NCBI GenBank assembly: GCA_021613535.1
Contig: CP075497.1
Coordinates: 2,108,001 to 2,172,000 of the forward strand
DNA from: Adineta vaga
Lineage: Eukaryota > Animalia > Rotifera
Reading direction: 5' to 3'
Length of the DNA stretch: 64,000 bases
The notes below the pieces were generated by a model that was given only the letters and a program-made list of their open reading frames with translations, did no database searches and was not told the origin of the DNA. The translations under genes and the position numbers were made by a program. Below are positions 9,094 through 13,218 of the stretch, in pieces (the stretch's first letter is position 1; every line of letters begins with the position of its first letter).

Positions 9094-9570
9094 TCATTTA
9101 TTCATTAAGATTTCAACTGAATACGTCTTGGAAATTAAACCACCATGACCAAGCCAAAAAATTGCTAACAACGATGCGAAATAAGCGAATAGAAATGCAA
9201 CTACTGTTAAATAATATGAATAACCAAGATTTGAATTCACAAAATTAAGATACGATCCCAGAGAAGTTAATAAAAAGATACATATCATAAAAAGTAATAA
9301 AGGTATAAAACATCGAATATAAATCACTTGTTTTTCATTGATAACTTTCGTTAAAAGTAGAATAAGTAGAATTATACAAATAATCAATAGCATGATGGAA
9401 ATAACTGCCAGAATACTCGGAAGTTTCGAGCATTGATCACAAAATAAATGATGATATTGATGAAAAAACCATCCCGGTGTTGATAAACCCATCATCGAAA
9501 AGATCGTTGACAAAATTATACTAACAAATATACATAATATCAAAAAAATCTCACTGAATATTCTCATCAT
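9094..9570 (-). CDS. Small four-pass membrane protein, claudin/PMP22-like topology, single exon, 158 aa
   Basis: Four hydrophobic segments; TM1 followed by GLSTPGW and a Cys pair (FCDQC); LGYSYYL precedes TM4, resembling the claudin/PMP22 GxSxxL motif. Confidence 0.6.
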   Translation of the reverse strand: MMRIFSEIFLILCIFVSIILSTIFSMMGLSTPGWFFHQYHHLFCDQCSKLPSILAVISIMLLIICIILLILLLTKVINEKQVIYIRCFIPLLLFMICIFLLTSLGSYLNFVNSNLGYSYYLTVVAFLFAYFASLLAIFWLGHGGLISKTYSVEILMNK

Positions 9571-9894: not shown

Positions 9895-10835
9895 ATGGCA
9901 AATCATACAGAAATTGATACGTTTTTGGATGAAAAAAAACAAATTATTTCATCAAAACCAAGAAAATATCATGCAAAATGGTGGTATCAAGAATATAATT
10001 CTCAAGAGATAATTTCAAATATTATCGAATCATATAATTTCCGAGCGGTAGTTATTTTCTTAGTTGTTATTGACACATCATTAGTTGTTACTGAAATCTT
10101 ATTAGATTCATTTAAAATTCATTATGAATGTGAACATTATGATCAACATCCATTAAATTTACGTAATAAAATCAAAAAAGAACGTGTGGAATATGCGATG
10201 GAAATCGTACATTTTACATCGATTATTATTCTGAGCTTTTTTTTTATTGAATTAATCATACGAATATACGCCTGTGGAAGAGAATTTTGGAATATTCGAA
10301 GACGAAAAATGGAATATTTTGATGCTTTTATTGTTATTGTATCATTAATTATTGATTTATGGCTTTTACATGGCGAGAAAATTCTTCTTGGTGAACAATT
10401 AATTCTTATACTTGCACTTCGTTTATGGCGTTTTGTACGAATTATTAGTAGTAAGTTAAGTTTTTCGATTAAAATTGATAGAAAAAGAAAGATTATCTTC
10501 ATTCAGGTGTAGCTGAAAGTATTCGACATGGTCAAAGAAAACATAAAGAACGTTTAAATCATCAATATCTTTTTGCAGTTCGTCGATTAATTGAGCTCCT
10601 TCTGTATAAAACAACTTATGCAGAGAAAAATCAAGATAAAGATTTCGATTCGTTACTCGAACAGTTTCGAATGGTTGATGAACAGTGTAAATCATCTTTA
10701 GAAGCATTAGATCAAAATCAGGAATTAACTTCTTCACGTGTTGTTGCTCAATTCGTAGAACAAATTCAAGGAATTGAAAATAAGAATAATCCCAGTGTTA
10801 TATCAGCAATGTTTACTAAAGAACCACAACTTTAA
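9895..10835 (+). CDS. HVCN1: Voltage-gated proton channel Hv1-like, copy 1; exons 9895-10450, 10507-10835 (294 aa)
   Basis: Stand-alone voltage-sensor domain: S1 VIFLVVIDTSLVVTEILLD (selectivity Asp), S2 HFTSIIILSFFFIELIIRI, S3 EYFDAFIVIVSLIIDL, S4 LRLWRFVRII (RxWRxxR Hv signature); no pore domain; 56-nt intron after S4. Confidence 0.88.
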
Positions 10836-11133
10836 AGTCTTCCGGCCATTTTTTTGTACTATAAAGAAGTTTTAAAACATCACGTTTCAGTCGGGATTTA
10901 CATTCTCTTCAGAAATAAATGGTATTAGTGGGTAGAAATAGGACATTTTTTTGATGCGATACACATACCATGTGAAAAAATAAACTTAGGATACATCATG
11001 TCTATGAAAAAAACATTATAAAAGAAAAGCAAAAAAAAGTTACGAGAAAAGAAAAAAACAATTTTTTTCTGCATTGACCTTCGCGTGCAAGTCTCCATCG
11101 ATTTACTCGTCATTCTGTTAAAACCTCGAAACA

Positions 11134-12065
11134 ATGAAGAAAGCAGAGACAGAAACGTTTATAAATATCAATAAGAGAAAATCATCTTTCGATACACATG
11201 GATGCTTTTGGAAATGGTGGAATCAAAAATTTCGTTGCCAACAAATTATTTCTCGCGTTATCGAATCATTTTATTTCAGTGCCTTCGTTATTTTCTTAGT
11301 TGTTGTCGATACAGCATTAGTTATCACAGAAATCTTGTTAGATTCATTCAAAATTCATTATGAATGCAAACATTCTGAACAACGTTCTTCAAATTTTCAT
11401 AATAAAATCAAAAAAGAAAATGTGGAAATGGCTATGGAAATTGCACATTTTGCATCGATTGCTATTCTCAGTTTTTTCGTCATTGAATTAACCATACGAA
11501 TATTTGCTCGTGGAAGAGACTTTTGGAATATTCGAAGACGAAAAATGGAATATTTCGATGCAATTATTGTTATCACTTCATTAATTATTGATTTATGGTC
11601 TTTGCATATTGAAAAGAAGCTCCTTGGCGAACAATTAATTCTTATACTTGCACTTCGATTATGGCGTTTCGTTCGAATTATTAGTAGTAAGTGCGTATGT
11701 CTTGAAATTCAGATTGAACAAATCGATTTGTCTTAGGTGTAACTGAAACTACTCTTCATAGACAGAGTAGACATAAGGAACGTTTGAATCATCAATATTT
11801 TCTTGCAATTCATCGATTAATTGAACTACTTGGTCACAAGACAACGCAAGCTGGGAATATTAGTACAGAAAATCTCAATTTTGTACTTGAACATTTTCGA
11901 ATGATTGATACACAATGTAAATCATCGTTGGCAGCATTAGATGAAAATGAAGAATTAACTTCTTCAGCTGTTGTTACAAAATTCTTAGAAGAAATCACTG
12001 GAATTGAAAAACAGAATAGTTCCCAGTCTATTTCAGCAATGTTTGCTAAAGAACCACACGTTTAA
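11134..12065 (+). CDS. HVCN1: Voltage-gated proton channel Hv1-like, copy 2; exons 11134-11686, 11737-12065 (293 aa)
   Basis: S1 FLVVVDTALVITEILLD, S4 LRLWRFVRIISS; same intron position as copy 1 (50 nt); intact frame after splicing. Confidence 0.88.
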
Positions 12066-12283
12066 AATCTTTTAACTATTTTTCTTGTATTGTAAAGAAA
12101 TTGTGAAACGTCATTAGAAATATACGATCTAATCGAGGAGAAATGAAAGATTTCTAATACAATACACATATTACCAGAAGATACGACATGCCTGTTACAA
12201 AAAATAACGAGAAGAGAAAAAAAAACAATTTCTTCCCCTCGACCTTCGTGTACAGCTCTACTCGTTGTTCTGTTAACATCCAA

Positions 12284-13218
12284 ATGGTAAACAAAGCAGA
12301 AAAGGACACGTTTATGACTGAAAACAAGAAAAAATCATCTTTAGCTTCACATGGATGTTATTGGAAATGGTGGAATCAAAAATTTCGTTCTCAAAAACTT
12401 ATTTCTCATCTTATCGAATCATTTTATTTTCATGCTTTGGTCATTTTCTTAGTTATCGTTGATACAGCATTAGTTATCACAGAGATCATCTTAGATTCGC
12501 TTAAATATCAATATGAATGTCAAATTCATATTCACCATGTATCGAACCATCGAAATGAATTAATGAAAGAACGTCTCGAATTGGCTATGGAAATCGCACA
12601 TTTTGCATCGATTGCTATTCTCAGTTTTTTCGTCATTGAATTAACCATACGAATATTTGCTCGAGGTAGAGAATTTTGGAATATTCGAAGACGAAAAATG
12701 GAATATTTCGATGCAATTATTGTTATCACTTCATTAATTATTGATTTATGGTCGTTACGTGGTGAAAATAAACTTCTCGGTGAACAATTAATTTTTGTAT
12801 TGGCATTTCGTTTATGGCGTTTTATTCGAATTATTAGTAGTAAGTAAATATATCTTGAAATTCGGATTGAATAAATTGATTTGTCTTAGGTGTAACTGAA
12901 GCTACTCTTCATAGACAACGAAAACATAAGGAACGTTTAAATCATCAATATCTTCTTGTTATTCGTCGATTGATTGAACTACTTGTTCATAAAACAACTC
13001 ATACTGAAAATTATGATACTGATAATCTCGATTCTTTACTCGAACATTTTCGAATGATTGACGAACAATGTCAGTCATCCTTTGAAGCATTGGATCAAAA
13101 TCAAGAATTAACTTGCTCAAGTATTATTACACAATTTTTAGAAGAAATCAATGGACTTGAACAAAAGAATAAGTCTTCTGTTATTTCAGCGATGTTTGCA
13201 AAATCATCTGAAGTTTAA
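12284..13218 (+). CDS. HVCN1: Voltage-gated proton channel Hv1-like, copy 3; exons 12284-12839, 12890-13218 (294 aa)
   Basis: S1 FLVIVDTALVITEIILD, S4 FRLWRFIRIISS; same intron position (50 nt); start chosen by alignment to copies 1 and 2. Confidence 0.88.

Follow-up and report, generated by a model that had tools for sequence, protein, structure and literature searches.

The 64,000-nucleotide stretch of DNA analyzed here (the window) covers positions 2,108,001–2,172,000 of chromosome C6 of the bdelloid rotifer Adineta vaga. Between window positions 9895 and 13218, it carries three related genes in tandem (g1, g2 and g3), which were originally predicted to encode Hv1-like voltage-gated proton (Hv) channels and to represent a local, fully retained triplication. 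The locus raises the question of whether these genes encode proton channels, and whether the array is the product of a single triplication. Our analysis indicates that the trio are probably proton-channel genes that form a bdelloid-specific subgroup, located beside the published 'Hv1 group' and distinct from the 'Hv2 group'. The assignment of the trio to the Hv family is well supported by its sequence. The proteins may carry proton currents, combine into homo- or heterodimers and have a link to desiccation or oxidase support.

Gene models and signature residues

All three genes are located on the plus strand, contain two exons each, have no internal stop codons and encode proteins of 294, 293 and 294 amino acids (aa). 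The first exon of g1 (9895–10450; 185 codons plus 1 nt, corresponding to residues 1–185 of the deposited protein P0001) encodes a short N-terminus, an S0 helix and the S1–S4 helices. It is followed by a 56-nt intron (10451–10506, GTAAGT..CAG) and by a second exon (10507–10835) with 108 full codons and a TAA stop, which encodes a cytoplasmic helical C-terminal domain. The S0–S4 exon of g2 (11134–11686; 184 codons plus 1 nt, deposited as P0002) and that of g3 (12284–12839; 185 codons plus 1 nt) are each followed by a 50-nt intron (11687–11736 and 12840–12889, both GTAAGT..TAG) and by a second exon that ends in TAA (11737–12065 and 12890–13218, respectively). All three introns are in phase 1 and split the same Ser codon directly after the ...RIIS motif at the end of S4. 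The genes are separated by short spacers of 298 bp (g1 to g2) and 218 bp (g2 to g3). Reading the sequence confirmed the predicted layout of three same-strand, two-exon genes with one shared GT-AG intron after S4.

We searched with single exons of the window genes and, for g1 and g2, used the proteins deposited for A. vaga, P0001 (I4U23_027905) and P0002 (I4U23_027906). Both deposited proteins are labelled 'hypothetical protein' and exactly equal our gene models. A protein matching g3 was found neither by word search nor among any of the proteins retrieved, and g3 may therefore be unannotated. An in-frame ATG is present upstream of g3 (12188), but it falls in sequence whose homologue in g2 is the non-coding 5′ flank; consequently, we took position 12284 as the start of g3. 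In a Logan contig from another bdelloid, an intronless 293-aa open reading frame runs across the exon junction, as expected of a spliced mRNA, which confirms the splice site.

The signature codons of an Hv channel were verified at their coordinates in each gene, as originally predicted. The S1 Asp is encoded at 10072–10074 in g1 (Asp60), 11308–11310 in g2 (Asp59) and 12461–12463 in g3 (Asp60). The S2 Phe (g1 Phe116, 10240–10242; from 11476 in g2 and from 12629 in g3) is followed by the S2 Glu (g1 Glu119, 10249–10251; from 11485 in g2 and from 12638 in g3). The S4 motif R-x-W-R-x-x-R is located at 10420–10440 in g1 (R176, W178, R179 and R182), 11656–11676 in g2 and 12809–12829 in g3. The S3 Asp pair (D143 and D154 in g1) is kept in all three genes. 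In HMMER alignments, the counterparts of human D112, H140, F150, E153, D174, D185, R205, W207, R208 and R211 are all present in g1 to g3. The human residue numbers on the alignment are our own, and the Asp60/59/60 residues align with the Asp of the VVLD motif in structures 5OQK and 3WKV, which we take to be D112.

We compared these positions across 59 distinct members of the trio's subgroup, drawn from genomes and metagenomes. Asp60, His106, Glu119, Asp143, Asp154, Arg176, Trp178, Arg179 and Arg182 are conserved in all 59 members, and the charge-transfer Phe116 is kept in 58. An acidic S1 residue together with RxWRxxR is the published criterion for recognizing an Hv channel, and the importance of Asp112 was itself found through comparison with the non-conducting protein C15orf27/TMEM266 (PMC10377628).

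Each protein is predicted to be a pore-less, four-helix voltage sensor whose S4 continues into a long cytoplasmic helix. The AlphaFold2 model of P0001 (pLDDT 82.5, pTM 0.69) contains only S0, S1–S4 and cytoplasmic helices; S4 is unbroken as part of a helix spanning residues 166–226, and three more helices follow. The model has no S5–S6 pore domain, and its sensor superposes on solved voltage sensors with Z-scores of 12–13, the best being the voltage sensor of Ci-VSP (Z 13.2, root-mean-square deviation 2.9 Å over 128 residues). Many voltage sensors rank equally by structure, and therefore the fold is confirmed while Hv and VSP proteins are not separable by this comparison. A Foldseek search against the PDB returned no match at an E-value of 0.001 or better, and a shape search of the Atlas returned nothing informative on the family. 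By analogy with characterized Hv channels, the sensor itself would be the path for protons, with the S1 Asp acting as the selector, gating would occur as the three S4 arginines cross the charge-transfer center formed by Phe, Glu and Asp, and the C-terminal helix would mediate dimerization.

Family assignment and the possibility of non-conducting sensors

Sequence searches favor Hv1 over other voltage sensors. Using phmmer against the PDB, the top solved-structure matches of g1, g2 and g3 were mouse and human Hv1 (E-values of 2e-12, 6e-11 and 9e-9, respectively), compared to E-values of 0.07 or worse for Ci-VSP and about 0.3 or worse for other voltage sensors. A protein language-model search ranked 'voltage-gated hydrogen channel 1-like' first (0.91), while the Atlas cluster of TMEM266 ranked 14th (0.88). 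When 1.84 billion representative sequences were searched with a profile of rotifer, mollusc and cnidarian members, 2526 relatives were recovered; those that could be named were Hv1 proteins of Ciona, turtle, fish, amphioxus, crinoid, mite and jellyfish. Word searches of proteins extended no further than rotifers, molluscs and Clytia, so the named chordate and other anchors were taken from this profile search and from cluster look-ups.

The trio's position within the family was determined from a maximum likelihood tree of 48 voltage-sensor sequences. The trio belongs to a subgroup with full support (100/100) that contains one gene from each Rotaria species, two from A. steineri, three from A. 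ricciae, three from A. vaga and one transcript-like contig. This subgroup is located inside a bdelloid-only clade (100/98) together with the published 'Hv1 group' and a further type encoded on chromosome C3. The same clade contains the A. ricciae channel ArHv1, which we identified as CAF1315436.1 by its accession and by the numbering of R211. Both the nesting of the trio in a clade with ArHv1 and the phmmer results uphold the original prediction of an Hv1-like identity.

In the only published study of bdelloid Hv channels, Yan, Boschetti and Hong (2026) described two isoforms or groups, one of them tied to stress survival (PMC13530225). When expressed in HEK293 cells under recording conditions established for Hv channels, ArHv1 produced voltage-dependent currents with a V1/2 of +89 mV (PMC13530225). 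Voltage-dependent currents were also recorded from ArHv2, for which proton selectivity was demonstrated (PMC13530225). No trio-subgroup accession was seen among the accessions listed by that study, with its supplementary tables outside this check (PMC13530225). We therefore regard the trio as an undescribed, bdelloid-specific Hv subgroup and array of moderate interest, multi-gene Hv families themselves being already known.

Common to the trio and ArHv1 are the three S4 arginines, the S1 Asp, the SVA..S.R sequence that opens the C-terminal domain, a WWN motif located before S1 and the phase-1 intron that follows S4; the S2–S3 linkers of both also carry a 3-residue insertion. The two are nevertheless only 30–38% identical. 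Unlike ArHv1, the trio has an N-terminus that is short and lacks the Cys-rich stretch, a Ser instead of an Asn three residues past the third S4 arginine (R3), an RRRK linker between S2 and S3, and a tandem arrangement at one locus without an ohnologue. ArHv1 has itself been characterized by patch clamp.

All functionally mapped residues of human and mouse HVCN1 (5OQK and 3WKV) align with the trio, even though overall identity is about 30% or less. The differences consist of the replacement of human N214 by Ser and of H167 and H168 by Arg, the 3-residue insertion in the S2–S3 linker, and a longer, multi-helix C-terminal domain that lacks a Pfam VGPC1_C match. The Ser at the N214 position and the RRRK linker, which contains the Arg aligned with H168, are marks of the subgroup.

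Several observations weigh against the assignment of the trio as proton channels. The Pfam family Ion_trans scores only 23.4 bits for g1, below its 25-bit cut-off, and gives no match for g2 or g3. The second exons do not match VGPC1_C, the Hv1 C-terminal coiled-coil family, in a Pfam scan with E-values up to 1. Structure comparison is unable to tell Hv channels from other voltage sensors, and the tree contains no TMEM266 or VSP sequence. The position of human N214 is a Ser in 54 of the 59 subgroup members, and the HMMER alignment places an Arg at the position of H168 in the trio; we take H168 to be involved in pH sensing in human Hv1. Finally, the trio's proteins evolve 2 to 10 times faster than those of neighboring genes, with nonsynonymous divergence (dN) between A. 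vaga and A. ricciae of 0.22–0.45 compared to 0.03–0.13. The Pfam scan is nearly blind to the trio and uninformative about its family.

The rapid protein evolution, the Ser at the N214 position and the C-terminal domain unlike Pfam's Hv1 coiled coil would fit a trio of voltage sensors that no longer conduct protons. Such proteins could have a regulatory or sensor-subunit role comparable to that of TMEM266/HVRP1, or could modulate other rotifer Hv channels through heterodimers. Conduction can indeed be lost in Hv-derived proteins (PMC10377628). However, the S1 Asp, which is replaced in TMEM266 and VSP proteins (PMC10377628), is present in every subgroup member, as are the S4 Trp, the three S4 arginines and the charge-transfer Glu and Asp, and all but one member keep the charge-transfer Phe. 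Moreover, the nearest characterized relative of the trio, ArHv1, gave voltage-dependent currents, and TMEM266 falls below the Hv1 clusters in the language-model search. Consequently, we consider a non-conducting role unlikely, and proton-channel genes of a bdelloid-specific subgroup remain the probable reading.

Three specific identities were considered and rejected. TMEM266 (HVRP1/C15orf27) and Ci-VSP share the four-helix voltage-sensor fold with the trio, but the acidic S1 residue is missing from TMEM266 and VSP, and the S4 Trp is missing from VSP, including Ci-VSP (PMC10377628), while the trio has both. A TMEM266/HVRP1 identity was rejected based on the S1 Asp, the total length of 294 aa without a long cytoplasmic C-terminus, and the language-model rank. 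A VSP identity was rejected based on the S1 Asp and S4 Trp and on the absence of a phosphatase domain in the Pfam scan, where the weak Ion_trans match was the only one; the E-values of VSP matches are also 7 to 11 orders of magnitude weaker than those of Hv1. Grouping of the trio with TMEM266 is thus argued against by the S1 Asp and the language-model rank, and grouping with VSP by the phmmer E-values. Membership in the bdelloid Hv2 group was rejected, as R2, the second charge position of S4, is an Arg in all three genes and not the Lys of that group.

History and selection of the array across bdelloids

The order of the genes around the array is conserved: a Forkhead gene comes first, then a claudin-like gene encoded on the other strand and the Hv genes, with an unnamed gene and a UCH gene after them. 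Between these shared neighbors, there are three Hv copies in A. vaga, three in A. ricciae, two in A. steineri and one in Rotaria sordida, all with the same intron. The independent A. ricciae assembly contains its three-gene array in the same order and between the same neighbors as in A. vaga. The claudin-like neighbor, a gene with four transmembrane (TM) segments located upstream of the array on the minus strand (9094–9570), is conserved in A. ricciae and A. steineri. Accordingly, the copy count that the original prediction had proposed yields one, two, three and three genes at this locus in four bdelloid species, and the trio turns out to be only part of an expansion to at least eight genes in A. 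vaga.

In pairwise comparisons within the A. vaga trio, the ratio of nonsynonymous to synonymous divergence (dN/dS) is 0.35–0.63, while it is 0.13–0.37 in comparisons with A. ricciae; it is below 1 for every pair and in both exons. All three genes remain under purifying selection. The amino acid changes within the trio are concentrated in the N-terminus, the His-rich extracellular S1–S2 loop, the S3–S4 loop (for example, residue 159 is an Arg in g3 and a His in g1 and g2) and the C-terminal tail. It is plausible that these variable loops and tails are the sites of differences in gating, Zn2+ or pH sensitivity, or partner choice.

The raised pairwise dN/dS, which reaches 0.63 in exon 2, could also be a sign that one or two copies are young, redundant duplicates heading for loss, unexpressed or non-functional, so that the locus would in effect encode one channel. 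The variation in copy number among species fits such a history, as does the presence of g1 and g2, but not g3, among the deposited proteins found. We nevertheless judge it improbable. The three open reading frames and all six splice sites are intact, every key residue is kept in each copy, dN/dS does not reach 1 for any pair in either exon, and A. ricciae likewise keeps three intact copies.

The trio's copies are 63–75% identical in exon 1 and 57–66% identical in exon 2. Although bdelloid genomes are degenerate tetraploids that are hard to assemble, an assembly artefact in which haplotypes or ohnologues were laid side by side is very nearly ruled out, because the copies differ at 25–43% of their residues, have different flanks and include a g1 intron unrelated to the others, because tandem copies lie between the same neighbors in independent A. 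ricciae and A. steineri assemblies, and because the true ohnologous segment is located elsewhere, on C3 at 12.83 Mb, without an Hv gene.

The ohnologous segment is inverted on C3 (G000:C3:12831000-12838200). It keeps the Forkhead gene (51–77% identical), the unnamed downstream gene (61–80% identical) and UCH, and has only 1.8 kb where C6 carries the claudin-like gene and the trio. We therefore rejected the idea of a retained ohnologue of the array; the segment keeps the neighbors without any Hv gene, and the claudin-like gene is missing as well.

The maximum likelihood tree clusters genes by species, grouping g2 with g3 (99/91) and all three A. ricciae genes with one another (100/93). In approximately unbiased (AU) tests of positional orthology with A. 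ricciae, the pairing of g2 with the second A. ricciae gene was rejected (P = 0.0001), as was that of g3 with the third (P = 0.001), while that of g1 with the first was not rejected (P = 0.06). A tree of exon 2 has no resolution on positional orthology. Synonymous divergence is 0.39 between g2 and g3 and about 0.6 between g1 and the others, compared to 0.53–0.81 for flanking A. vaga–A. ricciae orthologues.

The copies g2 and g3 also contain a candidate gene-conversion tract of 80 nt, where positions 11521–11600 of g2 are identical to positions 12674–12753 of g3 on the plus strand, extending from the S2–S3 linker into S3. Permutation tests give P < 1e-4 for this tract using all sites, and P = 0.013 using third codon positions alone. 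The introns of g2 and g3 are about 86–88% identical, while the g1 intron is unrelated to both.

Together, the species-wise clustering and the 80-nt tract indicate gene conversion or parallel duplication, rather than a single frozen triplication. The locus would have expanded from one gene, as in Rotaria, to two, as in A. steineri, and to three, as in A. vaga and A. ricciae, after which the second and third copies would have exchanged sequence or, alternatively, arisen by parallel duplication. We read the array as evolving in concert; the alternative is that the second gene was duplicated in parallel in each lineage, and the data separate neither from the other. Of the original prediction, the local three-gene array stands, and the single retained triplication does not, given the copy numbers in the four species, the AU rejections and the conversion signal.

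Two further observations concern the genes of this locus. The 5′ flanks of g2 (10986–11133) and g3 (12136–12283) are 58–70% identical over about 150 bp and have in common a stretch that contains GACCTTCG, while the g1 flank is unrelated; the shared flank may be a promoter or a trans-splice region. In A. ricciae, the deposited 273-aa model of the middle gene (L011:4727-5653, P0037) skips part of S1 via an extra intron, even though the exon is a single uninterrupted open frame, and the acceptor used in the model also omits four residues present in the other family members. The model is probably an annotation artefact here.

A more specific proposal is that the trio constitutes a third, functionally distinct type of bdelloid proton channel that forms heterodimers, in which conversion keeps the TM core uniform while the His-rich loops and tails diversify, giving graded gating or graded Zn2+ or pH sensitivities. 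The Ser at the N214 position, an all-basic S2–S3 linker in place of the His pair and the multi-helix C-terminal domain would be the marks of such a type. We put this proposal forward tentatively, as it is possible but rather doubtful.

The locus matters for several reasons. Hv channels are valued for structure–function work, natural paralogues being scarce, and the locus provides a natural series of variants, from one to three copies across four species, that differ mainly in loops and tails. As the differences are located there, the determinants of gating, Zn2+ or pH sensing and dimer compatibility could be tested by segment swaps. It also offers a clear example of an ion-channel gene array shaped by concerted or parallel evolution. 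It overturns nothing, as both multi-gene Hv families and bdelloid Hv paralogues were already known.

The wider Hv repertoire

The original prediction had used the single HVCN1 gene of most studied animals as its yardstick, which is outdated. Multi-gene Hv families occur in Limulus, myriapods and molluscs (reviewed in 2023, PMC10377628), as well as in bdelloids (PMC13530225), and Aplysia californica has three functional Hv paralogues, AcHv1, AcHv2 and AcHv3, that differ in gating (Chaves et al., PMC10911540). Aplysia is a precedent in which a single animal has three Hv paralogues, but these are old and differ widely in structure; AcHv3 lacks the first S4 arginine (R1) and has a huge S1–S2 loop (PMC10911540). 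They are not reported as a tandem array in that study (PMC10911540), whereas the rotifer genes lie together as a local array, are 57–75% identical and appear to evolve in concert.

The bdelloid repertoire is larger than the two published groups. In the haploid A. vaga assembly, we count at least eight Hv-like genes, which fall into four groups, and one further copy that is clearly broken. Among the eight, a gene on C5 may be interrupted by a long interspersed nuclear element (LINE). Two of the genes, one on C2 (P0044) and one on C5, represent the Hv1 group. The latter (L004, G000:C5:2930797-2934306) is the closest A. vaga relative of ArHv1, with 54% identity over the sensor, and has an extra intron within S4 in addition to the shared post-S4 intron. 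Its open frame has no in-frame ATG upstream of S1, and the 0.5–1.6 kb upstream of it contain a tandem-repeat open reading frame and a reverse-transcriptase-like one. It is possible that a LINE has interrupted the upstream part of this gene.

Two A. vaga genes are of the Hv2 type, with a Lys at R2 (L008 at C3:13.318 Mb and L010 at C6:1.452 Mb). Like the trio, the Hv2 group encodes a pore-less Hv-type sensor in the same genomes. It differs from the trio, which has an Arg at R2, by the Lys at that position and by a His three residues past R3; in addition, its S1 is encoded by an exon of its own, and in the tree it falls outside the bdelloid-only clade, where its branch is very long. Both L008 and L010 bear this His, an extension that is typical of Hv channels from protists, plants and ichthyosporeans (PMC10377628). 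The nearest language-model cluster of the Hv2-type genes is from Mucoromycota (0.92); introns are present, and the branch is very long. The bdelloid Hv2 group may be of non-animal origin, which we regard as only a lead.

The fourth A. vaga type is encoded on the minus strand of C3 (L006, G000:C3:15945300-15945782) and has a Glu at the S1 selectivity position and R-x-W-H-x-x-R in S4. A second copy (L007/L009, C3:19430389-19430789) is broken by stop codons. The protein collection contains one relative of this type (P0188, 64% identical).

A carbonic anhydrase gene was also looked for beside the C5 Hv gene of A. vaga, and none is present within 20 kb. In A. ricciae, one gene model (P0141, P0143 and P0144) fuses an alpha-carbonic anhydrase domain (residues 30–265) to an ArHv1-type sensor (residues 341–474), indicating that carbonic anhydrase and ArHv1-type genes are adjacent or fused in that species.

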